Origin: Laetmonice hystrix
Taxonomy: Eukaryota
Assembly (NCBI GenBank): GCA_965235115.1
Contig: OZ249451.1
Location: forward strand, 1,798,001 to 1,862,000
Reading direction: 5' to 3'
DNA: 64,000 nucleotides
The stretch's first letter is position 1; every line of letters begins with the position of its first letter. Positions 1 to 63,948 of the stretch are shown one piece after another. The translations under genes and the position numbers were made by a program. The notes under the pieces are model-generated. The model ran no database searches and was not told the origin of the DNA. It was given only the letters and a program-made list of their open reading frames with translations.

Positions 1-3000
1 GCCAACCAGGAAGCCCGGGAGGAAGAGGTGAAGCAGGACCAAGAGGCGAAGCAGGACCACGTGGAGAGGCTGGCAGTCCAGGTGGAGCTGGGCCTGCAGG
101 ACCCGCTGGATCACCAGGCCAGCGTGGTGAGGCAGGACCTCAAGGAGCCCCAGGAAGTGCAGGGCAACCAGGCTCACAGGGACCGAGAGGAGAGTCAGGC
201 CCTGCTGGACCTGGAGGTGCGAGAGGTGAACCAGGCCAGAGAGGAGAAGCAGGGACACCTGGATCTGCAGGTCGACCTGGAGAGAGAGGACAGGCTGGAT
301 CACCTGGACCTGCAGGACAGGCTGGTTCACCCGGAACCCGAGGAGAGGCAGGCCCACGAGGTGAGCAAGGACCACGTGGGGAGGCAGGAACACCTGGATC
401 CCAAGGAACGCCTGGCCAAAGGGGAGAGGCAGGACCTGCAGGACAATCTGGTCCTGCAGGACCATCTGGCGCTCCTGGGCCAAGGGGAGAAGCAGGTGCT
501 CCTGGAGCACCTGGCCGTGGAGAACAAGGTCCACGTGGAGAAGCTGGAACACCTGGTACTCCAGGTAGACAGGGCGAAAGAGGAGCCGCCGGACCTGCTG
601 GTCCATCAGGACCACAAGGACCACAAGGTGGACGTGGTGAACCTGGTCAGCGAGGAGAAGCTGGACCAAGGGGAGAAGCAGGATCACCTGGTGGTGCTGG
701 TAAGTTGAAATGAATATTCTCCACGCTTTTTATGATTTTCTTTACTCGTAATTCGATTAAAATAAACGATACTTCTAAATTCTGTATAATTTTTTTATTT
801 TATTTATGACCACCATTTCTTGATGAAAAGTCATATAAATAATGTGGCATGAATGTGTAGGTCCGGCCGGCCCTCAGGGTCCACAAGGACAACGAGGAAC
901 ACCGGGCACTGACGGACAGCCAGGCTCAGATGGTCAGCCAGGATCACCTGGCGCACGAGGTGAACCTGGTGCAGCTGGAACACCAGGCGCCCGTGGAGAG
1001 CCAGGTCAGCGCGGCGAAGCAGGAACTCCAGGACAGGCTGGAAGGCCAGGAGAACGAGGAGAAGCTGGTCCACAGGGTGCAGCTGGTTCAGCAGGCCCAT
1101 CTGGCCCTGCCGGATCCCCTGGACAACGGGGTGAAGCTGGACCACGCGGAGAGCCCGGATCAGCTGGTGCACCTGGTAAGATTTGGAAAATTAACAGTTC
1201 ATGTCTTAGCTGAAAATAATTTAGGGACTCGATTGGTTCTGTTCAGACAATACAAGATTTTGTTTTACTGTCGTGAAGCTTATACATTAAACTTTTGACT
1301 GGGGTTTCCTGTTTCTTGTTTAATGTAAATAATTTTGTGAATGTGTTTCATTTTCAGGTCGCGATGGTCAGCCTGGAGCTGCTGGCCCACGTGGTGAGCC
1401 AGGAACAGATGGACAAGCAGGAAGTAGAGGAGAAGCAGGACCACGAGGTGAGGCAGGACCACAAGGGTCTCCTGGTCAACGTGGTGAAGCCGGTGCACCT
1501 GGATCACCTGGAAGCCGTGGAGAACCAGGCACTCCTGGATCAGATGGCTCCGCTGGACCAGCTGGACCAGCCGGTACTCGTGGAGAACCCGGACAACGTG
1601 GTGAAGCTGGACAACGTGGTGAACCTGGTGAGGCAGGTCGTCCTGGTACTGATGGCCGTCCGGGTGAGCGTGGCGAGGCTGGGCCTGCAGGTTCAGCTGG
1701 TCCAGCTGGACCCCGTGGAGAGGCTGGCCCAGCTGGAGCGCGAGGAGAGCCTGGTCAAGCAGGCGAAGCTGGATCTCCTGGACGAGATGGTAAGAAGCAG
1801 TCTTGTTTTCAATTTTACTTAATTGGAAGAATCATTATATTTCCTACTGATACGATTAAACCCTTTGCTGATCATAACAAATATTGCTTGAAAAGGATCA
1901 CCTGGAGCGCAAGGCCCCGCAGGACCACGAGGAGAACCTGGACTTGCTGGGCCCGCTGGTGCTGTAGGACCATCTGGACCTCGTGGCGAAGCTGGCACAG
2001 CTGGCAGAGATGGATCACCTGGTCAACGGGGTGAACGCGGTCAACGTGGTGAAGCTGGGCAGCCTGGATCTGCAGGACGACCAGGTGAGAGAGGTGAGGC
2101 TGGACCGGCCGGAGCAGCAGGAGAGCCTGGAAGAGCTGGTTCTCAAGGACCACAAGGAGCACGTGGTGAGCCAGGTCAGCGTGGAGAGGCTGGTGAACGT
2201 GGACAGGCAGGATCACCAGGATCACCAGGTAAGGGCTTCTAATTTGATTATTAACTTTTAGGAATTAAAGAAAATTTCATAGGTATACTTCAATGATTGC
2301 TAATCAATTATTCCTCTTCATAACTCACTTAACATTGCAATTACAGGTACCGCTGGTTCTCCTGGATCTCAGGGAGCCCGAGGTGAAACAGGATCGCAAG
2401 GACCACAGGGAGCACGAGGTGAAGGAGGAGCACGTGGTGAAGCTGGAACTCCAGGATCCCCAGGGCAGCGTGGTGAGCGAGGTGAACCAGGTGCTGCGGG
2501 ATCACCTGGAACAGCTGGCCGACCAGGAGCACGTGGAGAGCAAGGATCTCAAGGACTACAGGGAGAACGTGGCGAAGCTGGAACACCTGGCTCTGATGGC
2601 AGACCAGGAGAGAGAGGTCAACCAGGTGAACCTGGCCGAGCTGGTTCCCCAGGAGCAAGAGGTGAACCAGGCACGGACGGTCGCCCAGGTGAGCGTGGAG
2701 AACAAGGACAACGAGGAGAAGCCGGAGCACCTGGTTCACCTGGAAGGGCTGGAGAACGAGGGCAAGCAGGACCTGCTGGCCCCCAGGGAGCAAGAGGAGA
2801 GGCTGGCCCGCAAGGAGGCAGAGGTGAAGCCGGGCAAGCGGGATCAGCAGGTGAACGTGGCGAACCAGGAACAGATGGTCGACCAGGTACGTCATGGTTG
2901 AAATATTATTATCATTATTGGAGAGAGTGAGATACACGGGCCGATAATGACAGGTCCTGGGATGGGGATGAAACTTAAGGGGATTATCCAGATCTAAACT

Positions 3001-6000
3001 CCTTAAGATAAATAAAATTATTTTATTTTGTATGATACGCCTACCGCTTACCAGTTCAAATGGTTACTTTAAAATGCCTGTTCGAAATGATTTACTAATA
3101 CTTTTTAAATTTGTATTAATCAGGCTCCGCTGGAGCTCCTGGTCAACGTGGTGAACGTGGTGAGGCCGGACCAGCTGGCCAACCAGGATCAGCCGGACCA
3201 TCAGGACCTCAGGGCCAGAGAGGAGAGTCAGGAGCACCTGGCACCGCTGGTCAACGTGGAGAGGCAGGACAGCGTGGCGAGCCTGGTTCTGCTGGTTCAC
3301 CTGGCAGGCCCGGCGAAAGAGGACAGCCTGGCTCTGCTGGCCCAGCTGGACCACAGGGACCACAAGGATCAAGAGGAGAACGTGGTGAGGCAGGACCAAG
3401 AGGAGAGCAAGGCGCACGTGGAGAAGCAGGCACGCCAGGATCTGCAGGGACACCAGGATCAGCTGGCCCTGCTGGATCTCCAGGCCAACAGGGACAACGT
3501 GGAGAACGCGGAGAAGCTGGAGCAGCAGGAACCCCTGGACAACGCGGAGAGGCCGGTCAAAGAGGAGAGGCTGGAGCCCCTGGGTCCGCAGGAAGTCCAG
3601 GACAGAGAGGTGAAGCTGGTGCACCAGGATCCCAAGGACAACGCGGAGAAGCTGGTCCACAAGGTGGCCGTGGTGAAGCTGGACAGAGAGGTGAAGCTGG
3701 AACTCCAGGAAGAGCGGGTGAGCGTGGTGAGCCTGGAACACCAGGCCGCGATGGATCAGCTGGAAGGCCAGGGCCCCCAGGACCTGCCGGATCCCAAGGA
3801 CCTGCTGGAAGTCGGGGAGAACCAGGCACACCAGGTTCACAGGGAGCACGAGGAGAGAGGGGAGAACGTGGAGAACCTGGCACTGCTGGACGTCCTGGAG
3901 AACGTGGACAGGCCGGATCTCCTGGTTCACAGGGATCGCAGGGTCAACAAGGCGCTCGAGGAGAGCCTGGTACCCGTGGTCAATCTGGCGAACGGGGAGA
4001 GCCTGGAACTGCTGGATCACCAGGTAAGTTGCCCTATTTTCAAATCTTTTGCGGATCACATCATTTATGTTTATAAGTGTATAAATCTGAATGGATATTT
4101 CAGTATGTAATACTAAAATATATATTTTTCCTTATAGGATCTGCTGGACCTGCTGGACCACAGGGACCAAGAGGTGAAGTTGGTCCTCAAGGACCAGTAG
4201 GAGCTTCAGGAGCCAGAGGAGAACCAGGAGCAGCAGGATCACCAGGACGACCTGCAGAAAGGGGTGCACAAGGAGAACAAGGAGCAGCAGGCCCTGCTGG
4301 ACCAGCTGGAGCTCCAGGTCAAGCTGGAACCCCTGGACAACGTGGCGAACCCGGCACAGCTGGAAGTCCTGGTTCTCCTGGACCTCAAGGTCAACGTGGA
4401 GAACGTGGTCCTGATGGGCAGGCAGGAAGTGCAGGAACACCAGGTTCACAAGGTCAACGTGGTGAGAGAGGTGAAGCAGGTCCACAAGGTGCTAGAGGAG
4501 AGGCTGGAACTGCTGGAACACCTGGTAGCCGCGGCGAACCTGGTAAATATGCTATAAAATTTGTTGTTCTATAAAGTTTTAAGTAACAGGAGAAAATAAG
4601 AAAATCTAAGTGCATTGTGCCATAACAGTATACATACACTGTGTTTCAGTAAAAGCCTTTTGGAAAAATAGTTTGGATCTGCACCGCCTTACACTGTTGA
4701 TGAAACTGTAATATGTTTCTTTCAGGAACACCTGGATCACCTGGTCCTCAGGGAAGTCGAGGACTCCCAGGTAGCGCTGGACAGGCTGGAGCAGCTGGTC
4801 CTGCTGGAGAGCGGGGACAGCGTGGAGAACCAGGAGCGAGAGGAGAAGCCGGTGAAAGAGGTGGGCAAGGTGAGCGTGGTCAAGCAGGAACCCCTGGGTC
4901 CCCCGGACAGCAAGGACAACGAGGTGAGGCCGGGCCCCAGGGAGCTCGAGGCGAGGCAGGGCAGGCTGGATCTCCAGGAACTGCTGGAGCACCAGGAACA
5001 CGAGGTGAACGTGGTGAACCAGGAACACGTGGACAGGCTGGTACGCCTGGATCCCCTGGTCAACGTGGTGAACGAGGAGAAGCTGGACCACAAGGCTCTG
5101 CTGGAACACCTGGGTCTCAAGGACAACGTGGTGAAACGGGCGGTCGTGGAGAGGCTGGACCTCGTGGAGCACCAGGCCAACGAGGAGAACCAGGTTATTA
5201 TACTAATTGCAATTCATACCAGACATATGATTTTACGTTACGCTTAGAAAAGCAAAATGCCACTGAAACCTATTAACTAGACTTTGCACCCGAGTATTCT
5301 ATTTTCTTATTATCTAATACACAACGTTATGAACACATTAGTTTAGTGTGTGTTGCCCTCTTGCAAATCCATATAGTTAATATGGAGCGAAAGACCAGAT
5401 ATAGTATTTGTTATTTTCTGCAAATTCAAGGTACCGCTGGTACTCCTGGATCACCTGGACAGCGTGGTGAGCCTGGCTCAGCTGGAGCAGCAGGACCCGC
5501 TGGCCCATCTGGACCACAAGGACAAAGAGGCGAGGCTGGTACAGCTGGACAACGTGGCGAGCAGGGCGCAAGAGGTGAGGCTGGTGCACCTGGATCTGAC
5601 GGTCGCCCAGGAGAGAGAGGTGAGGCAGGTTCCCCAGGTAGCCCAGGACAACAGGGATCACCAGGTTCACAAGGTCAACGAGGAGAGGCCGGCCAAAGAG
5701 GAGAGGCTGGTCCAGCAGGTGAACCCGGAACACCAGGAACAGCAGGCAGACAAGGAGAGAGAGGTCTTCCTGGTCAACCAGGAACAGATGGACAACCAGG
5801 TGCTCGTGGTGAAGCTGGACCAGCTGGACCACAAGGTCAGAGAGGTGAACCTGGTACCCGTGGTGAGGCAGGCGCTCCTGGTACCCCAGGACGTGCTGGA
5901 GAACGTGGCCAACCAGGATCTGCAGGATCTCAAGGATCGCAGGGACGCCGAGGTGAACAGGGTGGACGTGGTGAGCAAGGAGCCCGTGGAGAACCAGGTT

Positions 6001-9000
6001 CTGCTGGATCACCAGGTACGTACTACTCATTTCAATTTGCCACCAAGTTTGGTAAATGAAAGAAAGGTGTCTGCTCAATATTTTTCTTCCCATTTTATGA
6101 AAATCATCAAGAGCACTTAAAATGTCATTTTCAATGTAGGTTCACCTGGCGAGGCTGGTCCACAGGGACCTCAAGGTGCTGCAGGCAGACCAGGACCAGC
6201 TGGATCAGCTGGACAAGATGGACAACGAGGTGAACGAGGCGAGGCTGGAGCACCAGGTACGCCTGGATCTCAGGGTCAACCAGGAGCTCGTGGCCAGGAT
6301 GGTGAAGCCGGACAACCAGGACGTCAAGGAGAACGTGGAGAACCAGGCCCTGCTGGACAAGCAGGTTCTGCAGGAAGTCCAGGACAGCGAGGCGAACCCG
6401 GTCAGCGTGGCCAGCGTGGCGAACGCGGAGAGGCGGGATCCCCAGGATCTGCAGGACAACAAGGTTCAAGGGGTGAACCCGGATCACCGGGATCCGCTGG
6501 TCCACAAGGAGCACGGGGTGAGGCTGGAGAAAGAGGTGCCGATGGTTCTCCAGGAACCCCAGGTCAACGAGGAGAAGCTGGAACCCCTGGAACAGCAGGT
6601 AGACAAGGTGAAAGAGGTTTACCTGGAACCGCTGGTCAGCCTGGCTCACCTGGTCAACGTGGTGAACCAGGTACCCCTGGAGGCCAAGGTGAACGTGGTG
6701 AAGCCGGCCCAGCAGGACCCCAAGGATCAAGAGGAGAAGCAGGTAAGAAAATATTTTTAGTAGTTGGACTCAGATTTTCTGTTCTTTGACACTTGATTAT
6801 CAATATTAATGTTAATTGAAATACACATTCAAATATATTGTTTTAATTGTGAAATACAGGCGCTGATGGAAGCCCAGGATCTCCTGGACAACGCGGTGAG
6901 CGTGGAGAGCCTGGCCAGGCAGGAACACCTGGATCAGCAGGACAAAGGGGAGCGCGAGGAGAGGCTGGAGCCCGTGGAGAACCAGGTGCCCGTGGCGAGC
7001 CAGGAACGCCGGGATCGCAGGGATCACCAGGCTCACCAGGTCCCGCAGGTCAAAGAGGAGAGGCTGGCCCTGCAGGCAGTGCAGGTCAGGCTGGACCCGC
7101 CGGACCACAAGGACCTCAAGGACAGCGTGGTGAACAAGGAGCACGTGGAGAGGCAGGTGAGGCTGGCCGTGCTGGAGAAAGAGGCCAGCCAGGGTCTCCA
7201 GGACAAGCAGGATCCCAGGGTGCTAGAGGTGAACGTGGAGAACAGGGAGCAAGAGGAGAGGCTGGAACTCCTGGTTCCCCAGGACAGCGGGGAGAACCAG
7301 GCACACCAGGATCTGCAGGTAAATGGCAGCTAATATTTGAATTTTTATTATATATCCCAAATTTAAGATTTTGTCATCAGCATCTTCATTATCAATAACA
7401 ACATTAATACTACTATTCTTTTAATATTTTCATGATGATTTTATTCTATCTTCTATCTATCGAATCTATGTTACATTCCCTATAATTATCAGGATATCCA
7501 TCGCTATCCTTCCTTCTTTTAGCAGTACTGATGCCATTTTTACTTAATTAATTTACATTAAATTCTACTGCCTAATAGGCCAAGCTGGTCAAGCTGGTCC
7601 ACAAGGGCCACGGGGTGAGCGTGGAGAAGCAGGGCAGCCAGGATCCGCAGGAGAAGCAGGGCAGCCTGGATCCAGAGGAGAAGCAGGACCCGCAGGACCC
7701 CAGGGTGGCCGTGGAGAGGCAGGTGCTAGAGGCCAAGCTGGCGCCCCAGGATCCCCAGGCCAGCGAGGAGAGAGAGGCGAACCAGGCACGGCCGGATCAG
7801 CTGGACCTCAAGGGCCACAAGGTTCCCGTGGAGAAGCAGGACAGCGAGGTGAACAAGGCGCTCGTGGAGAAGCAGGGACACCAGGATCACAGGGTGGCCC
7901 AGGTCAACCAGGACCTGCTGGACCAGCAGGTGCCCCTGGCCAAAGAGGTGAGCGGGGAGAGGCTGGCTCTGCGGGAACTCCTGGACAACGTGGCGAACCA
8001 GGACAGCGTGGTGAGGCAGGAACACCAGGATCACAAGGTCAACGTGGTGAACCAGGCCAAGATGGATCAGCAGGGGCACCAGGACAGGCTGGTGCTCAGG
8101 GTCCTCGTGGAGAAAGAGGAGAGCAAGGAGGCCCGGGAGCAGCTGGAACGCCAGGAGGACGAGGAGAACCAGGAGCTCGTGGTGAACCAGGAACGGCTGG
8201 CTCACCAGGCCGACCAGGTTCACAAGGTGCAAGAGGTGAGCCAGGACAGCGTGGAGAACAAGGACAACGAGGAGAAGCTGGTAGCCCAGGACAAGCAGGT
8301 ATGTTGTTGATATTAAAATGATACTTGGAGAAATACCAGAGTGAACTTAATGTGGATGACATTTCCCATAGCAAGCTATTCTTCAATTCGTCTTACTACA
8401 TTGAAACATTTACTGTCACAACCAAATTAAAACCAACTATAATCACGTCTAATCAGATTGATCTTTCAACATCATTACATGACAGATCGTTATGATTCTC
8501 ATTGACTCACAGGGTCGGCTGGACAGCCTGGCGGACAAGGACAACGTGGTGAACGGGGAGAAGCCGGACCAAGTGGGGCACCTGGATCACCTGGGCAACA
8601 AGGTTCTCGTGGAGAGCCAGGCGCGGCTGGAACCCCTGGCCAGCGTGGTGAACAAGGCGCACGAGGAGAAGCAGGTACAGCAGGCTCCGCTGGACAAAGA
8701 GGAGAACGAGGTGAAGCAGGCGCCCCAGGATCAGCTGGACAGGCTGGTCCTCAGGGACCGCGAGGAGAGCGTGGCGAAGCTGGCACTCCAGGTTCACGAG
8801 GTGAAGCCGGATCTCCGGGTGAAGCGGGCAGACAGGGTGAACGTGGTGCACCAGGTTCAGATGGTCAACCTGGAGCAGCAGGACCTCAGGTATGTATGGC
8901 AAATTTCTGAAGGAAAAGGAAACACAGGACAGAAATACTTTACAAGTATTCGATACCCCAGTGGTAAAAAAAAACTATGCAATGCTCTATCTTTGTCTTT

Positions 9001-12000
9001 CTTTTGTTGTATTGTAATAATTTATTTAGTATCAAATTGTATTCAATAAATGTCGAAAATAGTTTATAAAGTATTAAACAGGGAATAATACAACACAATG
9101 CTTCTCTTATTAAGGGACAACGTGGAGAACGTGGAGAACCAGGTTCTGCTGGAGCTAGAGGAGAGGCTGGTGCACCAGGTACTCCTGGTGAACGTGGCCA
9201 AGCTGGAACACCTGGGTCACCTGGACAAGCTGGACCACAGGGACAACGAGGAGAAGCAGGTCCAGGTGGCCAGCGAGGAGAGCGAGGAGAGGCTGGTTCA
9301 GCTGGAACACCAGGATCTCGTGGAGAACCCGGTATTTATCTCGTACTTTTATATATTACAAGATAAAGACTCTATATAAACAGTAAAATAGTCAACTTGG
9401 TTTAAGGAGTAGAAATAGCTAAACCACTCAAACAGTCAGCTTTGCCAGCTCACGGTTATTTCATATGATTTATTTTTTAACGATACAACTTTTAACCTAG
9501 TATTGTCTCTGCTTCCCTAGGATCTCCTGGACCAGCAGGTCCACAAGGTGCCCGAGGAGAAGCTGGACCCCAAGGACCAGCAGGGGCCAGAGGCGAAGCT
9601 GGACCTGCAGGACAGTCTGGTTCAGATGGCCGTCCAGGCTCCCCTGGTCAGCGTGGAGAACAAGGCCCACGTGGTGAAGCTGGTGCTGATGGAACACCAG
9701 GCCAGCGTGGAGAACGTGGAGAACCAGGTACAGCTGGGCAAGCGGGATCACCAGGTTCACAAGGACAACGAGGAGAGAGAGGCGAAGCAGGACCACAGGG
9801 ATCTCGTGGTGAGCCAGGAACCCCTGGAAGTGCAGGAGGACGTGGAGAACGTGGAGAACAAGGAGCTCCTGGATCAGCAGGGTCACCTGGACCACAAGGA
9901 CAAGCTGGATCACCTGGTCAACGTGGTGAACCAGGACAACGAGGTGAGCCTGGTCAGGCGGGACCACAAGGTCCTAGAGGTGAGGCAGGAGAGGCCGGTT
10001 CTCCAGGAACGCCTGGGTCACAAGGAGCCAGAGGTGAAGCTGGACAACGAGGAGCAGCTGGACAACGTGGAGAGCAAGGACAGCGTGGTGAGGCAGGACA
10101 ACCTGGATCGGCTGGCCCTGCTGGACCTGCTGGACCACAAGGCCAGAGAGGTGAGGCAGGAGCGGCGGGTCAGGCAGGTGCTGCAGGACAACCTGGACAA
10201 CAGGGCGCCCGAGGCGAGGCTGGTGCTGCTGGAACACCTGGACAACGTGGAGAAGCTGGACAACGTGGGGAGGCTGGTACCCCAGGCACGCCTGGTAGAC
10301 AGGGAGAGCGAGGAGAAGCAGGACCAGCAGGACCTGCAGGACAAGCTGGATCGCCAGGTCAGCGAGGAGAACAAGGTGCACGAGGAGAACAAGGAGCAAG
10401 AGGAGAGTCTGGCTCACCTGGAACGCCTGGTCAAAGAGGTGAACCAGGAACACCAGGAACTCCAGGTTCCCAAGGACAACGAGGAGAACAGGGTGAAGCG
10501 GGTCGACGTGGTGAACCAGGACAGAGAGGAGAAGACGGCTCCCCAGGTGCACCTGGATCTCGTGGAGAACCAGGTAACGTATTATAACCAATATTAAACA
10601 TATATGCTTTATTGTAAAGTAAATTGGCTACTTACGTATATACAATTTCAGAACCTGCCAATTTCAAATTGGATTTTAATATTGTGAACAGGTAGCCAAG
10701 GCGGCCCAGGATCACCAGGACAGAGAGGAGAAGCTGGTCCACAAGGAGCACCAGGTGAATCTGGTCCTGCTGGACCTGCAGGACAGCGTGGTGAACAAGG
10801 CGCCAGAGGAGAGCCTGGAGCAGATGGCCAAGCCGGACAACGTGGTGAAGCAGGTACACCTGGTACAGCTGGAAGGCCGGGAGAAAGAGGTCAAGCAGGA
10901 GCTGCAGGAGGCCCTGGACCACAAGGCCCACGTGGTGAACGTGGAGAAGGAGGAACTCCCGGACAGAGAGGGCAACCAGGTGAACGAGGAGAACCAGGTA
11001 CCGCAGGACAGGCTGGCCGACAGGGAGAAAGAGGTGAAGCTGGTGCCCCTGGTTCAGCTGGACAAGCAGGGTCCCCAGGCCAACGTGGACAACGTGGGGA
11101 GGCTGGAACCCCAGGAAGTCAAGGACAACGTGGAGAAGCTGGACCTAGAGGGGAGCCAGGAACCCCTGGCTCTCAGGGTGCACGCGGAGAACCTGGAACC
11201 CAAGGACAAGCTGGTGGCCCAGGCCCACAAGGACAACGTGGCGAGGCAGGAGCTCGTGGTGAAGCTGGACAGCCTGGTAGTCAGGGAGCCCGAGGTGAAG
11301 CTGGTTCTCCCGGACAAGCAGGACAAAGAGGCGAACCAGGACCTGCTGGGCCACAGGGTCCACAGGGTACCCAAGGACAACGTGGTGAGGCAGGCCAACG
11401 TGGTGAGGCTGGACAACCAGGAAGTCAGGGAGCTCGCGGAGAACCAGGAGAGGCAGGACGTGCAGGTGACGTATATTTTAGCGTACTCACCTGGGTCCAA
11501 ACGTTGTGTTTCTTCAGAATGATGAGCAGAACGTTTTAAAATTATATGAATTTAGTAACGCTTAATTTCATAATGACACATGCTTATATTATTATATCCG
11601 TTTATCAGGTACACCTGGTAGTGCCGGACCTCAAGGTCAGCGAGGAGAGGCAGGTCAACGAGGACAAGATGGATCAGCTGGCAGGCCAGGATCCCCAGGA
11701 CAACGCGGAGAACAAGGCCAACGTGGAGAACCTGGTCAGGATGGATCTGCAGGAAGTCCGGGAGCGCCGGGACAACGGGGAGAACCTGGCGCACAAGGAT
11801 CCCAAGGAGCGCCCGGTGCTGCAGGTCCGCAAGGACAACGTGGCGAACAAGGAGCCCGCGGTGAATCTGGGCAGCCTGGTAGTGCAGGACAGCGAGGAGA
11901 GGCAGGAGCACCTGGTCAGCGTGGAGAGCGTGGTGAGGCTGGCAGCCCTGGTGGACCTGGTCAGGCAGGACAACAGGGAGCACGAGGCGAACCAGGTGAA

Positions 12001-15000: not shown

Positions 15001-18000
15001 TCTGCAGGTCTAAGTGGACCTGCTGGACCTGCAGGACAACGTGGACAACCAGGATCAAGAGGAGAGCCAGGACAGCGCGGTGAACCTGGAAGCCCAGGTT
15101 CTCAGGGAGAGCGTGGACAAGCAGGGTCACCTGGTCTGCAGGGTAGACGAGGTGAGGCTGGACAACAGGGCCGTCAAGGAGAACGTGGACTACCAGGAGA
15201 GCAAGGACAACGTGGTGAAGGTGGACAGCGAGGCGAGATTGGGCCTGGAGGACCTCCAGGTATGCATTTTTCTTATTAATTTCTTATTTATGCAGTTTGC
15301 ACTGTAGAAAATTGCCACAAAAATAGAAAAGTGAAACCTAAAATCTGACAAAACAACGACCTAGTTTGCTCAATATGCCTGTGTGCTAATTAACATGTAT
15401 TTTTTATTTAGTTCTTGACATTTCTTTTCTACTATTAAATGGCAAGATTCTAGCGGATGTTTGGCCTATACTAATCCTATAATTCCTTGGATGCAGGTTC
15501 CGCCGGACAAGCTGGACCACCAGGACAACGTGGCGAAGCCGGGCCAAGTGGACAACCTGGCCCAGCAGGACAACCAGGACCTCAAGGCTCACGAGGTGAA
15601 TCCGGACAGCGTGGAGAACAAGGATCGCGAGGAGAAGCTGGACCACAAGGACCTCCCGGAGAACAAGGTTCACAGGGAACACTTGGAGAACCAGGACCTC
15701 CGGGACAAAGTGGAGGTATTGGTCAACCGGGACCTGCCGGTCCAAGAGGAGAAGGCGGACCACCAGGTCAACGTGGTGAAGCTGGCCCACCTGGGCAACG
15801 TGGAGAAGGTGGAAGACCAGGTCCGTCCGGACCGCCTGGTCAACGTGGAGAGGCTGGACCGGCTGGACCTTCGGGAGCTATAGGTGAAAGTGGTCCACAG
15901 GGTACCCGTGGAGAGCCTGGACCTGCAGGCCAGCGTGGAGAAGCAGGTGAAAGAGGACAACCAGGTTTAGGTGGACCTCTTGGACAACCTGGACCTGCCG
16001 GTCCACTAGGTCCAAGCGGCCCTCGAGGAGAGGCTGGGTTACCTGGCGAAGCGGGACCAGCTGGACCAGCAGGACAAAGAGGACAGCCTGGCCCACCTGG
16101 GCCTAGCGGACCTCAGGGAGAACGAGGGTCAGGTGGACCACCAGGACCATCTGGACCACTTGGACCCCCTGGACCTAGTGGTCCACGCGGTGAGGTCGGA
16201 GGACCTGGCCAATCAGGTCCACCTGGCGGCACTGGACTTCCAGGCCCACAAGGACAACGTGGTGAGCAAGGTCAACGAGGAGAAGCTGGACCACCTGGAC
16301 CGAGAGGGCAACCTGGACCTGGTGGACCACTCGGCCCGGCAGGACCTAGAGGTGAGCGTGGAGAAGGCGGGCCTCTTGGGCCTAGTGGACCACCCGGAGA
16401 ATCTGGTCCATCAGGGCCAGCTGGCGAAAGAGGTCCATCTGGACAGTCAGGTCAGCCTGGACGACCGGGTCCACCAGGACCACTTGGACCAGCAGGACCG
16501 GCAGGACCTCAAGGTGAGCGCGGACCACCTGGGTCACAGGGACCGAGAGGAGAAGGTGGCGAGCGTGGACCTGCTGGCGAACGAGGTGGACCTGGTCTCC
16601 GAGGATCCAGTGGAGAACGTGGAGGTGCTGGACCACCTGGGCCACAAGGACGTGCAGGTGAGTCCCATTCTGTGTAAATAACGCTATTTGAAACAACATT
16701 ATGATATATTTTATTCTATTCAATCGTTTAACCAATCTTTACTTTTGTTTTCAAAAGGCGAACGTGGACAACTTGGCAGTCCTGGTGCGACCGGCCAGAG
16801 AGGTCCACCTGGAGAATCTGGAAATGCTGGACCAAGAGGAGAGAGAGGTCCAGCTGGTCCCTCCGGACAGAACGGTTTGGGTGGACCTCCTGGTGGTCCT
16901 GGTGAGCCTGGACCTCAAGGACAGCGTGGAGAACGTGGAGAACGTGGATCACAGGGAGAACAAGGACGTCCAGGTCAGTTCTTCTAGTCTAGTCACAAAA
17001 ATAAATAAATCTACTTTTTGTTTTCTTTATATTCTTTAGATTTCACTAAAGAAATCTGAGTACAACAAAGCACAACAAAAATACTGACACCATGGTGTAA
17101 AAAAAATCCAGGTGAGCAAGGCCAGGCTGGACCACTTGGTCCCAATGGAAGACCGGGATCAACGGGATCGACTGGACCACGGGGACCTCCGGGACCAGAG
17201 GGCCGAGCCGGCCCCTCTGGCCCACGTGGACAGGTTGGATCACAAGGAACTAGAGGAGAACAAGGTACAAGAGGAGAACAAGGAGGGCGAGGACAGCCTG
17301 GACGGCCAGGAGAGAGAGGAAGCCCAGGTAAGCAACATTCCAGATTATGTCACAGTGTTTACCAAGAAAACTCCAGACCTACGTGTTATCAACTGAGGAT
17401 TTATAAGATTATGTCACAGTGTTTACCAAGAAAACTCCAGACCTACGTGTTATCAACTGAGGATTTATAAGATTATGTCACAGTGTTTACCAAGAAAACT
17501 CCAGACCTACGTGTTATCAACTGGGGATTTATAAGATTATGTCACAGTGTTTACCAAGAAAACTCCAGACCTACGTGTTATCAACTGAGGATTTATAAGA
17601 TTATGTCACAGTGTTTACCAAGAAAACTCCAGACCTACGTGTTATCAACTGAGGATTTATAAGGTGTCATTCTGATACCCCTGAAGCTATTTCATTATTT
17701 TCTTTTATTGTATACAGGAGCAACTGGATCTACGGGCTCAGAAGGAGCAACTGGGCCATCGGGTCCACAAGGCCGCAGAGGAGGACCTGGCCCACGTGGT
17801 CCTAACGGTCTCACTGGATCTAATGGCAGACCTGGCTTTACTGGAGCCACTGGAGTCAGAGGTTCGTTAGTTTAATAATTGTACACACACCATGCATTTA
17901 GTATAGGAACGAGCATACATTGAATTCCGCGCGTGAAAGACATGCACGTTAAAAACGATCTCTCATGCCCAATATCCGTGTTTACCTGCAGGACCGAGAG

Positions 18001-19345
18001 GCGGAGATGGAAATGCGGGACCACGTGGACCGACGGGAGCCACGGGACCGACAGGCCGCATGGGTAGGACCGGCGCCACTGGACCGGTTGGTCGTGACGG
18101 CCGCACTGGTGTCCGTGGTCCGACGGGAGTCATTGGCCCACGTGGTGCACGTGGACAGGCTGGTCTTGGTGCTCTTGGTAAGTCATCTATTTACCATTCT
18201 GTCTCTTGGATCTAACGAACTTCACTCAGAGGGGAGATGTCACAATTACATGATAGCAAGGTTTCCGCCAGAGGGTAAAATGGGTAAAATTCCGTACCCT
18301 AAAATTTTTCCAGGGTACGGATCCGTACCCTCAAAATCGTTGGTTAACCATTTTTCCATGAAGTGATAAAAAACATCCCCATGATGCCTTGATCAACTTG
18401 AAGGAATCAAATATAATGTTGTACAGTATAATGCAGTCTTTATTTGATTAATTCAGATACACCCCTCCTCTGGTCCGTACCCTAAATTTTTTTCTGGCGG
18501 AAACCCTGGACAGTCTAACTTGTCAACGGCAGTGGTGGTGGGGGGGGGGGGGGAAATGCCCTGAGATTTATTTTTTAATTCTGGTTGCGCTTCTGGTTCA
18601 TGGCTAATTAGGTCATCTGGCCAAATAAGAACCCGTTCTTTTTACGTCATGGGTTATTTAATTTTTAATTATACTCGCAAATATATTTCCCCAAAAAAAT
18701 GATTTTAAAAATTAATATTTGCCCTTTTTACAACGAATCTTTCGTCCTCTTTTTCTAGCTCTTGGACAGAAGATGGCGAAGGGAGAACAAGACGTTATGC
18801 GAGAGCAGAACATCTTGAAGAAGATGTCCGCTAAATCCAACACGTTCGCCGTGGGAATGGCAGCGTGGGCTGGTATCGTCACAATCGCCCTCATAGTCAT
18901 CGTGGCGATCGTCTACAGAAGAATCAAGTCGAATCGCCCAGGATCGTCGGCCGAGTCCGTGTATTCCGACGCAGAGTCAGGTTCCAACTCAGGTTCCTCC
19001 TTTGCCTACGACCGTTCCAGCGTTGTTGACATTGCGTCCAGTTGCGGGGATGGGGAGACGAACGACGGCTTCACAGAGGACCTACCTACAGCTCCGGTAG
19101 CCATGCCGGCCGAGGTCCGACAATTGGACAGCGAACTGAACGAGAAAACACTACGACACATTGCCGGACTCCACGAGGAGGGTGACGAGGACGACGACGA
19201 CGCCGCGTCTGTCGCCGACGTGCACGGTCAAGGTCAAAACAAGGGCGACGCCAACCACCTGACGACGTCCCGTCATCAGTTCCGCCATGCGCCTTTCAAA
19301 GGACTGCACGTGAACGAGAACCCAGGAGGGTCATCCTTCCTCTAA
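1..19345 (+). CDS. Gene A: giant membrane-anchored (type I) collagen, 5'-partial; 28 exons, about 4,770 aa in window, about 1,520 Gly-X-Y triplets + neck + TM + 142-aa cytoplasmic tail
   Basis: Hand-derived exons: <1-699, 861-1175, 1358-1789, 1896-2228, 2347-2886, 3124-4023, 4138-4542, 4726-5193, 5431-6015, 6140-6742, 6860-7318, 7579-8298, 8513-8889, 9115-9331, 9521-10573, 10692-11465, 11609-12058, 12190-12583, 12716-13032, 13162-13773, 13875-14477, 14720-15259, 15497-16657, 16758-16973, 17112-17327, 17718-17861, 17992-18177, 18759-19345 (TAA). All introns are GT-AG. 25 of 27 are phase 1 (all but the last split a Gly codon). Internal collagen exons are multiples of 9 nt, singly or as pairs around the phase-0/2 introns. 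The spliced frame is a Gly-X-Y repeat ([15 protein letters not shown]). Confidence 0.93.
17342..17661. repeat. Intronic minisatellite, 5 x 64 bp
   Basis: Unit agattatgtcacagtgtttaccaagaaaactccagacctacgtgttatcaactgaggatttata starts at 17342, 17406, 17470, 17534 and 17598. Copies are near identical. Confidence 0.95.
18257..18508. mobile_element. MITE-like element in the last intron of gene A
   Basis: 15-bp terminal inverted repeats caaggtttccgccag / ctggcggaaaccctg (14/15 match) and repeated internal ccgtaccct motifs in both orientations. No target-site duplication found. Confidence 0.55.
18759..19345 (+). CDS. Gene A terminal non-collagenous exon: neck, transmembrane helix, cytoplasmic tail ending ...GGSSFL
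   Basis: Acceptor ttttctag|CT at 18758/18759 joins in phase 1 to the exon ending ...GQAGLGAL-G|gtaagt (18177). It reads [58 protein letters not shown]..., the same frame as ORF 18719..19345. Confidence 0.9.
18845..18916 (+). other. Predicted transmembrane helix of collagen A ([24 protein letters not shown])
   Basis: 24 uncharged, mostly aliphatic residues followed directly by RRIK (positive-inside rule gives a cytoplasmic C-terminus). Confidence 0.88.
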
Positions 19346-21135
19346 AAGCCACAAGGTGGCGCCTTCGACGCACAGCGCATGCGTACTTTCTTTCGACTCT
19401 TAACCGTTAAAATGTTTGGATGGATGAATGGTATTTTTACAAGCTAATGAGGGGGCAAAAGGAGGTAGTTTCATACAGAACATTAACTCGGACTGCATAT
19501 CACTGAACTCCACTCAGCTGAAACATAGTCGTACCGTGACTGCCGCTCAGTTTATTAACCCTTGAACTGTGTTAATCTGGTGTTAGAATCTGCCACAGAA
19601 GTCAGGCTTTGATTGAAATACTCTCTCGGGCCACATTCATCCTTAGTCTTGTGTCCACTGCTGGTGAAATGAATGTTACCTGGCTGTAAGATGCATCTAT
19701 AGAAGGCTATAAATCGCTCAAATTCATTAGAAATAGAATTTGGCAAGTTGGGGCGGGAGCGTCGAGAGATTGTCACACTCTAAACAAAATCATTTCCGCA
19801 TTTATAATGCATCAGAAGTTAAAGGAAACATATATTATGCAATATTATCGAATTGTGCTTTGTTAACCTACGCAGTGTATATGTATTGGCTATAAGATGG
19901 TAAATAACTTATTGAGGTTTCTACACGGTGTCGGCCTACCGTTGGCGCACCTTGAACCCAGTATGCTGTAAGCAGCCCCCCAGTGCTCTAGTGAAGGGCT
20001 TGAGTCGCTCTACTGTCTCCAAGCCAAGCGTAGGCCAAATGGTTAAATCGTAACAATACCCGCGCCCACACCACTATCAGTAATATAGAACGCTTGGATC
20101 ATTACGTTAACCAACCTATAGATGAATCCAGAGGCTAAGTCTCAATTAGAGATTATTGAATTTAGTTAGTCCGTTTGAGTTTGGTGTCTGTTTGTACGCT
20201 CACTTAATCGACAGCCTCTATTTTGTGTCATGGAACTCTGGAAAATTTCTAGAGGGCTCCATATCAGCGTGTGTGTGGGTGTGTGTGTTTGTGTGTGTGG
20301 GTGGGCTTTCTCGGCGGCGAGACCAGCATTTGACATCGAGGTGCTGGAATTCATGCTAAACTTCCTAACTGGCATACATACTGACCCGTAAAGTATATGG
20401 TTTAGTACAAGCTGTTTAAATCCGGTGAGTGTTTTTTGTAGAACGGATATGCAGCCTTTTGTTCATACTATTGTAAGTACATTATCTCACTCAAGTCTTT
20501 CAGATGTTAGGGCGAACCATAAACTTAATAACCCGCAGATTTCCCATGCCATTGTGACGGGAACGTTAACCTAGGATATCACTATGATTCCCCAAGGACT
20601 TATTGTAAGCGCCAACTGCCATTCCGTTATAATATGCTCACCCGGCTGCAGTCTGTGATACATTGGTCGCGCATGCGTACAAATCTACTCTTACACACCT
20701 AAAAATGCCGAACCAGCAATCAACGGAGGTTTGGCTCCCGCCCAACGAGACCTACTGAGTGGTTATGTAACATTTGCATGCTTGGTAGAACGAGTCGGAG
20801 TTTTGTGTACGATTACGTAGCCGCGCGCGTGGAAGAAAAGCAATATTCAGTGGGATTCGGCCTTTAAGACCAGTGCAATCCAAATACACATGTGCAACCT
20901 GTAATTGGGTTTCAATAATCCATCCTTTAATTTCATGAAATTCATCCAGGCGTCCAGGCAATAATCAGAATGCTGACAGAGAGCGTTTATGTGTTTAATA
21001 CAAGCGCACCGTTATGGTAATATGCAGCCGTTATTAACAATGTCACGGTACTTCCATATATATGTATGTATAGGGGCATCATGCTTTCGTCAACGTTAAC
21101 CGAAATAATCGCCTCGAGTAATGAAAATAAAACAT

Positions 21136-21497
21136 ATTTTGTATAACAATTACTGGCTATATGTTGTTTATTGATAATAATCAATCAATCAATGATAATA
21201 ATCAATCAATCAATGATAATAATCAATCAATCAATGATAATAATCAATCAATCAATGATATGTCAGCGAAAAGCACACGGACACAGATAAATGCATACTG
21301 ATGACACATTGAGGCTACACAAACACATAGATTCTATACATACAAACATATATTGTATAACAATTACTGGCTATATGTTGTTTATTGATAATAATCAATG
21401 ATATGTCAGCGAAAAGCACACCGACACAGATAATGCATATTGATGACACATTGAGGCTACACAAACACATAGATTCTATACATACAAACATATATTA
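21136..21497. repeat. Tandem duplication of about 145 bp; the first copy carries a 21-bp (aatcaatcaatcaatgataat) x4 expansion
   Basis: ataacaattactggctatatgttgtttattgata...gatatgtcagcgaaaagcaca...gaggctacacaaacacatagattctatacatacaaac occurs twice. Confidence 0.8.
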
Positions 21498-22650
21498 TAC
21501 ATGTACACATATACATTATACATACACGTTTACATGCATGAAGGCCTACATCTAGGTAAAAAGCAAGTTGGCGACGTAAATTGCGATATCATACATAACG
21601 AGCGATACGATAGTATCGCGATACATAACAAAAGATACGATACGTATCACGATACATAACAAACGATATGATACATTATGACGATCGTTTTCGAGTTATA
21701 TTTGATTTATGGTTAGACTGCCACATAGAATCGGGAATCAGAAGCTTGGGTCAAAATACTCTTTGTGAACTTTTCCAGCGACCGATGGTACCTGTCACGG
21801 AGGAATCAGGTTCTGTGGCTAGAATGTCTCAGGACCTGAGATGCTGAGATTTGCCTGGCAGATAGTCGGATAGTCGTATTGCCGTTACCGTACGCATGTG
21901 TACACATTCACTGGATTTCATTTTGGGGATTTTTTTTGGCCGCTGCCGCATTACCGCATTATCGTTGCCGTTGCCGCAAAAACGGTAGATGTGTTCACAG
22001 CTTTACACCCTCACCTCTCCAAGTGGACACGTCAACCAACCTCTTCGTACTGTCAGGTTTTCAACAGCGGTTTTCAACATATATCCCCCTCAGGTCGAGG
22101 ACCACAGAAGGGGTGTGTGCATACAATTAATGCTATTCTAGGATAAAAACAAAGTCCCGCCGAAATTAAAAGTATTCAAGTACTACAGGTCATGAGTAAA
22201 GATTTAAGACAAATTTTGATTGATATTTTACGTCTGTAAAATTTGTTTTAGTGAACATACACAGATATTTTGAAAATCACCCAGCAAAATTGCGAGGTGT
22301 GCTTACTCTCCACATTGCAGTCACGTGTGCATGGTTTGATACCTGTTTGATATGCAAATAAGAGTGCCAGTCGCAGGAATAGACTATTGTTAGACGCTCT
22401 ATTGTTGGGCCTTTTGTTCTACGATTCACTGACGTGTGAAGAAATTGTAAGCCTAGCTTTGCCTGTATGAAACCTGTCGATCTATACGTATATCTAGCCA
22501 TCATAATGTGTAGTTAGCTTTTAGGAAAGTATGGGCGCAATGAAATGCCTCCAACCACCGGAGCTACAAAGCTCTGCTACGGGGTCGGGTACATACTCCC
22601 CCAACCCAGAAAAATATTGAAAGAAAAGTTCATTGCTTCCTACGACCCTC

Positions 22651-22900
22651 GCGCCTTCGGTGTTCGCGGGACACCAAACATCAGCCACTCTCAGCCCCCC
22701 CCCCCCCAACCAACCAACCAACAAAAGCTTCTCACGCCTTCGGTGTTCGCGGGACACCAAACATCAGCCACTCTCAGCCCCCCCCCCCCCCCCCCCCAAC
22801 CAACCAACAAAAGCTTCCGACGCGCAAGGCATTTGAGGCCAGTGCCACACCCCGGGGGCCGGGTATCAATATTTGAGGCCAGTGCCACACCCCGGGTATC
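22651..22900. repeat. Short direct duplications with poly-C tracts
   Basis: cgccttcggtgttcgcgggacaccaaacatcagccactctcag(c)n...aaccaacaaaagctt x2, followed by atttgaggccagtgccacaccccggg x2. Confidence 0.75.
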
Positions 22901-23017
22901 AATATCATCCGATCGAACCCCCTCCTTGCCCCCCCCCCCCCCCATTTCCTAAATCCTGGTTGTAAGACCGACTGACCATCCGCCCAGTGAAGGATAACCG
23001 TTTGCTCGTCTAGAGGG

Positions 23018-23553
23018 CGGCGGCTGTCCGTATTCCCGATACTCGCTCTGAGTCAGGCCGCCCGTATTCCCGATACTCGCTCTGAGTCAGGTGTTCAAGT
23101 CAACGTGCGGCGGCCGCCCGTATTCCCGATACTCGCTCTGAGTCAGGCCGCCCGTATTCCCGATACTCGCTCTGAGTCAGGCCGCCCGTATTCCCGATAC
23201 TCGCTCTGAGTCAGGCCGCCCGTATTCCCGATACTCGCTCTGAGTCAGGCCGCCCGTATTCCCGATACTCGCTCTGAGTCAGGCCGCCCGTATTCCCGAT
23301 ACTCGCTCTGAGTCAGGCCGCCCGTATTCCCGATACTCGCTCTGAGTCAGGCCGCCCGTATTCCCGATACTCGCTCTGAGTCAGGCCGCCCGTATTCCCG
23401 ATACTCGCCCTGAGTCAGGCGTTCAAGTCAACGTGCGGCGGCCGCCCGTATTCCCGATACTCGCCCTGAGTCAGGCCGCCCGTATTCCCGATACTAGCTC
23501 TAAGTCAGGTGTTCAGGTCAACGTGCATGCGGCGGCCGCCCGTATTCCCGATA
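23018..23553. repeat. Intergenic minisatellite, about 14 x 34 bp, with a recurring 21-23 bp insert
   Basis: Unit ggccgcccgtattcccgatactcgctctgagtca. A gtgttcaagtcaacgtgcggc-like insert recurs at about 23091, 23420 and 23508. Confidence 0.92.
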
Positions 23554-23691
23554 CGGGAGTCCACAGTTAGCGGTTCGTTGGAGCCAGAAATACCGGTTTG
23601 GTTGACGTTAGTGGGATAATTCCCCCAGAATAACTTCTCCACAAAATTTGTGGGCAGGGGTTCGGGTTAAGGTCAGGGCTAAAACACGGCG

Positions 23692-23778
23692 TGAACACCC
23701 CCTGTGCCCCCTGGAACCACCCCTGTCATTCGAACACCCCTGTGCCCCCTGGAACCACCCCTGTCATTCGAACACCCC
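23692..23778. repeat. Direct repeat, 2 x 38 bp
   Basis: aacacccctgtgccccctggaaccacccctgtcattcg twice in tandem. Confidence 0.8.
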
Positions 23779-23967
23779 ATGATGTTACCTCGTCAGACGA
23801 GCCCTTCCAACAATGGGCAGAGGTTATGCATGACTGATCGAGGCTGTAGTCGTGGATATGTTGTAGTACGGGGGGGGGAGTTACAGCCGTGGTCAGTCTA
23901 TTCATCAGTAGGCCTCACTCTTTGAAGCAACTCTCAGGGTTGTCAAACAAGTCGAAGGGTAGAGGTC

Positions 23968-24086
23968 AGGGGGCGAGGGGCAGAGGGCGAGGGGCAGGGG
24001 GCGAGGGGTGAGGCGGGGGGCAGGGGGAGAGGCAGGGGGAGAGGCAGGGGGCCAGGGGCAGGGGGCCAGGGGCAGGGGCAGGGGAA
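23968..24086 (+). repeat. G-rich low-complexity tract (G4-capable)
   Basis: More than 12 runs of G3-G6 separated by 1-5 nt (gaggggcagagggcgaggggcagggggc...). Confidence 0.8.
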
Positions 24087-25790
24087 ACCCTGGAGTGATA
24101 AGGTGAATTTCCTTGTAGCCCTCTCCCCAACCGGTGAAAGGTTTCCACACCCCTATAGGTGTGCAGGGAGGGGGGTCGACTGCCCCCTCCCCACCGCGCT
24201 TTGTTGTCGTTGCTGTTGTTGTTGGATCGCCATTAACACCATCATGTTCATCCCCCCCCCCCCCATTATAAATTATTTTATTTTATCACATTCATTGGCA
24301 GGTGAAGAGAATCAAGGGGACTAGGCCCCCTTTGGCGTCATATTTTGTTCGTGGATTTTTCTGAATGAATCATGTTGGACCCCTAAGACTTTTCAATATT
24401 GGAAACAATGTAAAAACAATGAAACACCATAATTTTATGTATAAAAGCTCATGTTTATTGCAACTCTCATTTTAAATACATCACATACAACTGACGTTAG
24501 GAGACATAGGTTATCTTGTACATTATAAGGAAAGTTAATTGATTCCCCCGATATATTTTATTATGGTTAGTCCAGCATTGACACAAAAGATGTGGAGATG
24601 CCACGTCATATCTCTAAAACTGCTTCATGTTTGTGCTAAAAGATTCAGACCCTCAGTGATGTCAGCGCCAAGAATTGCCGCGAATTAATCCAGAATCCAG
24701 TGTCACCAATCAGTAGAATGCATTAGTTTGTACACGGCCAAGTAGTATTATACACAGACAGCGGCGGGGGGGGGGACTATTTTCTTGGACCTTGCCAGAC
24801 GCTCAGCCCTAACGTTCTCCTGCCGAGTTGACAATAAACATTTTACACCAAGCACCGTGCTATCAGTGAGGTCGGTGACCATTTTGCCATGATTGTTTTA
24901 TTGGATTGCATCCATGCAACTCTATAAGGCGTAATGATATCTGGTTAATATAGGTTGGCAGATAGGAGTCGGGGGCAGTGTTGTATGCGTACCAATCATT
25001 TAATGCGTGACACGCAAACCACGGTCATCGGAAGGTGGGACGGTACCCGGATGTGCTCAGGGAGCCTAGTGAAGCCGCTCAAACTTCTTAGCGCTATTGA
25101 ATGATGTAGGCAAAAGCAAAACTTTGACTCATAAAAATATATATCTGAAAGACTTAAGGTATATGTCCTTGTTAGCATTCACTCATGCTCTCATATATTC
25201 TAACTATGAAGTGATTATGTATGAGACGCCAGGCTACTGATTCACACCCCCGTACTACCAGTCAATAAGTCTGACAAGAATAAAATGGTCATCAGTTATG
25301 TAAGTTAGCGGCTTTCTTTGCCATTTCTAGTCGACTGCGCATGTGCTGTACATTGAAACGTCACCGCGATTCTATCTCAATCGTCACTGGGGCTATAAAT
25401 AGCACCATGGTCACGTGACAGGGTAAACTTCCGGTAGGAGACAGATCCTACTGTAGCTTTCCCTGGTGTTTTGTATGAAACCAGCTTTTTGGTTGAGATA
25501 TTTCTTATTGCCTGCTAAATCGTTGTAAACGAACACAATGATGCTTTCATATCAATTTTTTAGGCATTTATGCATAGCTCTCGAAACTAGAGTCTCACCC
25601 GGTGGCTGTTTATCGTAGGTCCTAATTGTTGAAGCAGATATGACATGGATATAGGGTCTGCGAGTTGGGCATCCTAACTGTCCATGGTTTGTTGATTTTC
25701 AAATGTAAGTCATTTACACTGTAAGGCAGCTGACGTTAATAGTTTTTATGAGAACAGTTGAGGGTCTATTCACAGCCCGACTCCCCCCGA

Positions 25791-63948
<38,158 letters not shown>

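Follow-up and report, generated by a model that had tools for sequence, protein, structure and literature searches.

The stretch of DNA analysed here, which we call the window, comprises 64,000 nt (G000:C21:1,798,001-1,862,000 of an assembly of 627 Mb in 35 contigs) and carries the greater part of two giant, convergent collagen genes, gene A on the + strand and gene B on the - strand. Positions are given in window coordinates, and 70 kb of flanking sequence on the left and 60 kb on the right were added to the analysis. A six-frame scan that counted runs of at least six Gly-X-Y triplets found 1,552 triplets on the + strand (1-18,170) and 2,459 on the - strand (27,152-63,949), arranged in blocks that shift frame from one to the next across some 100-400 nt. 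These blocks were chained via GT/GC..AG pairs that preserved both the reading frame and the Gly phase. After extension into the flanks, 59 exons were modelled for gene A and 69 for gene B, and the two models present a common layout: a signal-peptide-like N-terminus, von Willebrand factor A (VWA) domains (two in A, one in B), a nearly uninterrupted Gly-X-Y helix, a charged neck of about 30 residues, a transmembrane segment (TM) and a cytoplasmic tail.

The Gly-X-Y phase was kept at 125 of the 127 modelled collagen junctions (57/57 in A and 68/70 in B), which is far beyond chance; two junctions of gene B and one of gene A have low scores because a helix interruption lies nearby. Nearly all introns of both genes are of phase 1 and split a Gly codon (G|GN). 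The exons measure between 45 and 1,161 nt, with lengths that are multiples of 9 nt in 51/58 collagen exons of A and 53/67 of B, and not a single stop codon occurs in the 17,267 helix codons of the two genes. In the helix exons tested, Pfam recognised the Collagen family (PF01391) and no other, for example in the gene A exon at 15,487-16,677 (E 1e-54) and in gene B at 28,657-29,790 (E 1.5e-49). For gene A the spliced model places 4,769 coding residues inside the window, and for gene B 7,343; about 4,570 and 7,226 of these are collagenous, and an earlier reading made from the sequence only had estimated about 4,570 and 7,240.

Direct evidence for splicing was obtained for gene B. Four sequencing runs from one sample of the same organism, none of them labelled as RNA, were compared with positions 25,500-31,400. 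Runs X1-X3 proved to be contiguous genomic DNA over this stretch, and X4, which carries no tissue label, behaves as RNA, with contigs that skip introns. The X4 joints match exactly all nine (9/9) modelled gene B introns between 26,143 and 31,318, and each carries CT..AC ends, that is, GT..AG on the - strand; none of these nine joints occurs in X1-X3. One X4 contig spans the 3' untranslated region (UTR), the TM exon, a 51-nt exon and collagen exons of gene B, with 26,142/3 joined to 26,695/6, and a further X4 contig on gene B measures 20,250 nt. Gene B is expressed and its collagen-TM junction is correctly spliced. Since the RNA contig reaches at least 25,500 from the TM exon, the 3' UTR measures at least 290 nt. 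Just beyond the RNA-tested stretch, one modelled gene B intron (31,434, - strand) uses a GC donor (ccg|GCAAGT).

Intron-free open reading frames (ORFs) from other species present the same joints. A B-type ORF of 506 amino acids (aa) (L027) aligns without gaps across six modelled exon junctions. An A-type ORF of 1,212 aa (L028) runs from collagen through neck and TM to tail, and its junction peptide GLGAV-A-LEKK resembles the modelled GLGAL-A-LGQK of gene A. A third ORF, of 3,540 aa and with an A-type tail (L032), fills the last 10.6 kb of a contig of 27,526 nt, and ORFs of transcript type that join collagen to TM were also found for orthologues of a third paralogue, gene C, described below. 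Accordingly, the joining of collagen exons to TM exons, on which the sequence-only reading had made its proposal depend, is seen in RNA of the same species for gene B and in A-, B- and C-type orthologues elsewhere. The contig of L032, Ga0373523_00001, comes from an environmental sample (JGI 3300036281) and is an A-type giant collagen mRNA, in which a prokaryotic gene caller had cut wrong-frame 'genes' of 2,963 and 1,410 aa. Such calls arise because alternative frames of collagen coding DNA stay open, and this is a general annotation trap.

As had been foreseen, both genes lack their 5' ends in the window and continue into the flanks, where the N-termini were located by ORF reading and Pfam. 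Gene A runs on for 16.8 kb, with its first collagen exon at -16,796 and a model start at about -20,102 (G000:C21:1,777,898). The ORF at this start has its Met at -20,102 and a classical signal sequence with the hydrophobic core LFLILVVFTTLF; two VWA domains (PF00092, E 9e-17 and 2e-16) were found before the helix. In gene B the collagen reaches 70,176, that is, 6.2 kb further upstream, and is preceded by an exon at 71,566-70,796 with one VWA domain (E 8e-8); the candidate start is a Met at 77,922 with the hydrophobic core LFTFVFVLLLFL ending in AFG, followed by a long satellite-filled intron. When the ORFs upstream of A were compared by tblastn with the region upstream of B, the first collagen exon was the last that proved conserved towards the N-terminus. 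The satellite in the first large intron of gene B (73,200-76,900; L004/L012) extends for about 3.7 kb with a unit near 120 bp and is open in several frames (recurring SGVEVDL..LYSV.WS.SRPISPV), so that it could pass for coding DNA.

At the 3' ends, each gene closes with a single exon for neck, TM and tail, joined in gene A through a last intron with the donor G|GTAAGT at 18,178 and an acceptor formed by a pyrimidine tract and AG at 18,757-18,758. In gene A the neck has about 29 residues, the TM lies at about 18,845-18,916 (best 19-residue Kyte-Doolittle window 2.74) and is followed by RRIK, and the cytoplasmic tail of about 142 residues ends in GSSFL. In gene B the corresponding parts are a neck of about 31 residues, a TM at about 25,980-26,051 (2.68) followed by KRLK, and a tail of about 62 residues in which the motifs LNDSESAF and SSVVD occur. 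The C-terminal parts after the helix sum to 197 residues in A and 119 in B. Pfam found neither a COLFI nor an NC1 domain in the C-terminal exons of A and B, in agreement with the neck, TM and tail first read there, and no further ORF was found between the last collagen exon and the TM exon of either gene. The orientation is thus not that of a type II protein, with an N-terminal TM and without a signal peptide: the TM lies in the last exon and the basic residues are C-terminal to it.

The complete helices measure 8,639 residues in A and 8,628 in B (2,875 and 2,868 Gly-X-Y triplets). The pattern continues unbroken for up to 3,456 residues, and each helix has four to five interruptions. The upstream extension has thereby delivered both the signal-peptide-like N-termini and the full helix lengths that the sequence-only reading had left to be found. 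The rise of a collagen helix is 0.286 nm per residue, which makes both helices 2.47 µm long. The two genes share much more than their length. The positions of 45 of the 58 introns of A coincide with introns of B, and from residue 2,832 onwards, over about 5,800 residues up to the C-terminus of the helix, the offset between A and B is constant at 11 residues, so there is no net insertion or deletion over this distance. Three interruptions coincide as well: A3189/B3178, A4242/B4231 (a G1G deletion in both) and A5180/B5169 (Gly to Ala in both). Outside Gly-Gly columns the identity is 34%. The simplest reading of equal length and in-register interruptions at such identity is that A and B must match residue for residue, either in a heterotrimer or through identical packing. 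Equal length, shared interruptions and adjacency of the genes suggest that A and B co-assemble as a heterotrimer.

The other possibility to consider here is that each chain forms its own homotrimer, giving two parallel 2.5-µm collagens, for example in different cuticle layers, body regions or life stages. It would agree with the unlike tails, which have about 142 cytoplasmic residues in A against 62 in B and differ strongly in their motifs too, and with the number of VWA domains, two against one. However, residue-for-residue pairing explains most simply the exact helix length and the interruptions held in register at the low identity mentioned; the genes are adjacent here and their orthologues (P0001 for A and P0003 for B) share one contig of 502 kb in another species; and Nereis cuticle collagen is said to have two distinct chain types, A and B. 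We therefore regard separate homotrimers as rather doubtful. A complex prediction with two copies of the neck and TM of A and one of B scored 0.07, a result which, according to the tool, is no evidence either way.

Regarding composition, the X positions of both helices are occupied mainly by Pro (24-28%) and Glu, and the Y positions mainly by Ala, Arg and Pro. The 17,267 helix residues of A and B include one Lys and no Cys, Tyr, His or Trp. Since Lys, Cys and Tyr are virtually absent, the usual cross-links based on Lys, Tyr or disulfides are impossible within the helix. Autocorrelation revealed no internal repeats in the helices (all peaks below z = 3.2), Tandem Repeats Finder no long ones, and Fourier analysis no dominant long period and none of 234 residues as in collagen I. 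The weak peaks and the lack of a dominant period indicate that the helix is not a recent tandem amplification.

The cytoplasmic tails define a family of their own. With Pfam, the tails of A and B gave nothing above threshold (only sub-threshold noise of Protocadherin and YxzE), and an ESM Atlas search with the tail of A gave no usable match. In the genome, the two tails find each other (E 5e-8 and 7e-9) and otherwise only a third locus, gene C, on contig C1; the three tails align with one another. A profile made from them was searched against 1.8 billion representative proteins and obtained 102 matches at E<=1e-3 and 24 at E<=1e-10, most of them short fragments. Seven of the 102 relatives carry Gly-X-Y runs directly before the tail, and several show a collagen-EGF-TM layout. 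The hallmarks of the family are a W-containing TM, an R/K stop-transfer, an acidic Ser-rich box (SDAESG or LNDSES) and SSVVD, to which lineage-specific C-termini are added, GSSF[LM] in the A type and T-x-L in the C type. In A-type tails (10 orthologues), with about 30% identity over about 130 residues, the W-containing TM, F/Y-R-R, SDAESG, SSVVD and GSSF[LM] are found; orthologues of the gene B tail are P0003 and P0005. The conservation of the tail argues for a function of the cytoplasmic part itself, and it is a matter of speculation whether the C-termini act as PDZ ligands. The sequence-only reading could not place the architecture in a named collagen family, and the tail indeed matches no Pfam family, nor did we find a characterised collagen family with it.

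Gene C encodes a helix of 5,162 residues (about 1.48 µm) with Thr at 57.6% of the Y positions. The helix is followed by four EGF-like modules, a related TM and, with ATRL at its C-terminus, a tail that belongs to the same family; the orthologues P0060 and P0085 present the same collagen-EGF-TM layout. The length of Riftia cuticle collagen is reportedly about 1.5 µm. According to a 2024 review, that collagen is stabilised by glycosylated Thr, and gene C, judged by its predicted protein, looks like a Thr-rich cuticle collagen of Riftia type.

The source organism is an annelid by its mitochondrial gene order. On the mitochondrial contig (G000:C35, 16,826 bp; L030, L031) all genes detected lie on one strand, namely 21 tRNA genes and cox1, cox3, cob and nad1, in the order cox1-N-(cox2)-D-Y-cox3-Q-(nad6)-cob-W-R-H-F-E-P-T-C-G-M-V-L...S-nad1-I-K-S, which we take to be the conserved annelid ground pattern. 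A cnidarian source, which came into question through the orthologous contig of the environmental JGI sample, is excluded by this tRNA set and gene order. In this genome, however, trnG is placed between trnC and trnM; trnA and one trnL were not called among the 21 tRNAs, and a second trnW that ARAGORN placed on the opposite strand (6,990-7,048) is probably spurious.

The coordinates of the features are collected in Table 1. Between the convergent 3' ends of A and B lies a spacer in which we found no further convincing gene; its tandem repeats occupy 21,172-21,674 and 23,112-24,078. Several of the longest introns of A and B are filled by young minisatellites (91-99% identity), and a local reversal of the GC skew at 32-34 kb is due to the array with the 33-bp unit. 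Against the assembly, the DNA runs of this sample show a 12-nt intronic insertion at 26,964, a 1-nt insertion at 28,017 and a 6-nt deletion at 30,040, the last site falling in the intron beside the exon at 30,090-30,215, and several single-nucleotide differences lie within 25,821-29,209. These differences probably represent a second haplotype.

Table 1. Positions of the features of genes A and B, of the spacer and repeats between and within them, and of the third paralogue (window coordinates, except for gene C).
Feature	Position	Strand	Basis
Gene A collagen exons 32 (3' part)-58 of 59	1-18,177	+	Splice model keeping the Gly-X-Y phase
Minisatellite in gene A intron, 64 bp, 5 copies	17,342-17,663		Tandem Repeats Finder; inside modelled intron
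Gene A last intron, 581 nt, between final collagen exon and TM exon	18,178-18,758	+	Consensus splice sites, phase 1
Gene A terminal exon (stop 19,343-19,345)	18,759-19,345	+	Sequence and spliced model
Spacer between convergent 3' ends (3' UTRs and repeats)	19,346-25,790		ORF reading, Tandem Repeats Finder
Gene B terminal exon (stop 25,791-25,793)	25,791-26,143	-	Sequence and RNA joint
Intronic minisatellite, 31 bp, 8 copies	26,286-26,539		Tandem Repeats Finder; inside modelled intron
Gene B 51-nt exon (last four Gly-X-Y triplets and ASAL)	26,696-26,746	-	Sequence; both joints RNA-confirmed (X4 record 17)
Gene B collagen exons 12-67 of 69	27,160-64,000	-	Splice model; nine introns RNA-matched
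Intronic minisatellite, 33 bp, 29 copies	32,465-33,424		Tandem Repeats Finder; inside modelled intron
Minisatellite filling a 1.4-kb gene B intron, 40 bp, 31 copies	62,470-63,714		Tandem Repeats Finder
Gene C (L018, L024-L026), 21 collagen exons	G000:C1:30,235,845-30,261,130		Genome tail search

Taken together, we propose, with a probability of roughly 0.7, that A and B are genes for cuticle collagen chains that are made as type I membrane precursors. The helices of 2.47 µm, about eight times the length of collagen I, fall into the length class of polychaete cuticle collagen, reported to be about 2.5 µm by Gaill et al. in 1991 and 1995, and the VWA domains, in the modelled position N-terminal to the helix, would fit a globular domain at the end of the rod. 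The abundant Gly-Pro-Y triplets of A and B also fit earthworm cuticle collagen, which has an unusually high content of X-position hydroxyproline. The chains are not of the short nematode type with Cys clusters. Of the original proposal of giant cuticle-type precursors, the length and the type I topology have held; the placement in the cuticle stays inferred, and size alone is not new, because annelid collagen gene models and transcripts of 7.7-8.9 thousand aa were published in 2025.

A mechanism can be outlined in which the chains would enter the endoplasmic reticulum and become anchored co-translationally by their C-termini. Within the membrane plane, neck and TM would then select three chains, align them in register and start the triple helix at its C-terminus, doing the job that COLFI does in fibrillar collagens, and the helix would zipper from C to N over 2.5 µm; the trimer would contain both A and B. 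The precursor could then travel to the membrane of epidermal cells, at their apex or on their microvilli, where the conserved tail would serve to sort it or to dock it to the cytoskeleton, and the helix with its N-terminal VWA globule would be laid into the fibre lattice of the cuticle, either after shedding by a protease or while still tethered.

Several points weigh against this proposal. Both the place in the cuticle and the heterotrimer are deduced. In the neck of A, B and their orthologues we see no conserved dibasic or furin-type site, so that shedding is unsupported and the release step is the weakest link; cuticle collagen that can be extracted would need another route of release. The collagen-TM splice of gene A rests on consensus sites and orthologues and not on RNA of the same species, and in both genes the exons for signal peptide and VWA are joined to the collagen by model only.

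A different role for the same molecules has to be weighed at this point, namely that A and B are genuine giant type I membrane collagens that are not fibre collagens of the cuticle and serve as long resident molecules for adhesion or anchoring, for example where epidermis attaches to muscle, in basal matrix, in chaetal follicles or in tube-secreting glands. A tail conserved over about 130 residues with several motifs is what a resident membrane protein with intracellular partners would be expected to have, and the lack of a visible cleavage motif in the neck agrees with it. However, the helix is as long as in the class of cuticle collagen that has been extracted; Lys, Tyr, Cys, His and Trp are almost missing from it, as is typical where a helix is built in bulk for structure and does without the usual cross-links; and the orthologue from the JGI sample lies on a contig numbered 00001. 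Furthermore, the single terminal globule agrees with the description from electron microscopy (2024 review), and the Thr-rich composition of paralogue C is tied in the literature specifically to Riftia cuticle collagen. For these reasons we consider a role outside the cuticle unlikely. That the giant size is an artefact of assembling repetitive collagen DNA, or that the genes are decaying pseudogenes, we reject with near certainty: such coding DNA is of low complexity, and the authors of the Alvinella genome voiced the same worry about their own models (PMC12403961), but the helices are open over all their codons, autocorrelation and Tandem Repeats Finder detected no long internal repeats, the tested stretch is spanned without a break by each of three DNA runs, gene B is matched by an RNA contig of 20 kb, and two diverged paralogues share one exon map, with orthologous transcripts of up to 27.5 kb.

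Returning to the cuticle proposal, it can be extended in a more tentative way, which we would not yet defend at even odds: annelid cuticle collagens, both the 2.5-µm type of A and B and the Thr-rich type of 1.5 µm, may form one family of type I membrane-tethered proteins, in which neck and TM replace COLFI for registration and nucleation at the C-terminus, conserved tails resembling PDZ ligands couple the helices to the microvillar cytoskeleton, and microvilli template the orthogonal, plywood-like lattice. If this were true, the cell would control the 'printing' of a collagen matrix at its apex, a mechanism to which nematode cuticle collagens, tethered at the N-terminus, would be a convergent counterpart. 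Annelid cuticle collagen has been a textbook curiosity since the 1960s-1990s, as the longest known collagen, whose fibres show no banding and form an almost perfect orthogonal lattice, and for its Thr-glycosylation in Riftia; in the literature that we found, its sequence is represented by peptide fragments only. The gene models pose the questions of how a heterotrimer of 2.5 µm registers and folds without COLFI, by what route a cell exports a rod that exceeds a transport vesicle many times in length, in what way microvilli give the cuticle lattice its pattern, and why helix length is held within 0.13% between paralogues that share 34% of their non-Gly residues. In addition, the catalogue of collagen architectures gains a type I membrane collagen, and natural giant helices free of Lys, Cys and Tyr may interest biomaterials work.

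Compared with known systems, the nearest likeness in membrane attachment is to the MACITs XIII, XXIII and XXV (COL-99 in C. elegans) and to collagen XVII, which also have a collagenous ectodomain tethered by a single TM and a coiled-coil-like neck close to the membrane; in the MACITs this membrane-proximal region nucleates the helix. To our knowledge, all membrane collagens described are type II. MACITs and collagen XVII have no signal peptide and short, interrupted helices, whereas A and B have a predicted signal peptide, a C-terminal TM and a helix about ten times longer, which would fold from the opposite end. The MACITs are described as type II proteins with an N-terminal TM and furin shedding sites. 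Our literature search, in which the classic papers were mostly outside reach, found no description of a C-terminal (type I) collagen anchor, of the tail family or of a length-locked gene pair.

Nematode cuticle collagens reportedly are also made as membrane-tethered precursors before cuticle assembly, according to work of 2023 on BLI-4/furin. The logic of an apical extracellular matrix is analogous, but their anchor is N-terminal, in contrast to the C-terminal anchor of A and B, whose helices contain no Cys or Tyr; the nematode chains have about 300 aa, interrupted Gly-X-Y, flanking Cys clusters and Tyr cross-links (2024 review). The VWA collagens (VI, XII, XIV, XXI, XXII and XXVIII) likewise carry N-terminal VWA domains directly before the helix; unlike A and B, they are secreted and have no TM, and their helices range from a few hundred to about 1,000 residues. 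With the fibrillar collagens (I-III, V, XI and the annelid interstitial ones) A and B share a long, nearly uninterrupted helix and, presumably, C-terminal nucleation. They differ in having no COLFI C-propeptide, no Lys for cross-links by lysyl oxidase and no periodicity of 234 residues, and also in gene structure, since fibrillar genes have phase-0 exons of 54 nt and A and B have the Gly-splitting introns and the wide range of exon sizes described above.

The closest relationship is with the annelid cuticle collagens themselves (Nereis, Arenicola, Alvinella and Lumbricus, and the Thr-rich one of Riftia), with which A and B share the annelid source, the 2.5-µm class, abundant Pro in X positions and, as modelled, a terminal globule; A and B may also correspond to their two chain types. 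The literature that we found ascribes to them no gene, anchor or cytoplasmic tail, and the identity of A and B with them is derived from length, composition and architecture. The 2024 review describes these collagens as proteins of high molecular mass that combine globular domains with a triple helix of very great length. The Alvinella genome paper (BMC Biol 2025, PMC12403961) reports, in the passages available, collagens of 8,859 aa in Alvinella, of 8,689, 8,413 and 7,719 aa in Paralvinella, and one in Eisenia, and treats them there under the cuticle, for their length and Pro content only. They belong to the same size class as A and B and are very probably orthologous to them; unlike what is described here, those passages have no TM anchor, VWA domains or paired genes and no tie to a measured molecule length. 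What appears to be new here is the membrane topology, the tail family, the pairing of A and B with exact conservation of length, and the Thr-rich paralogue that bears EGF-like modules.

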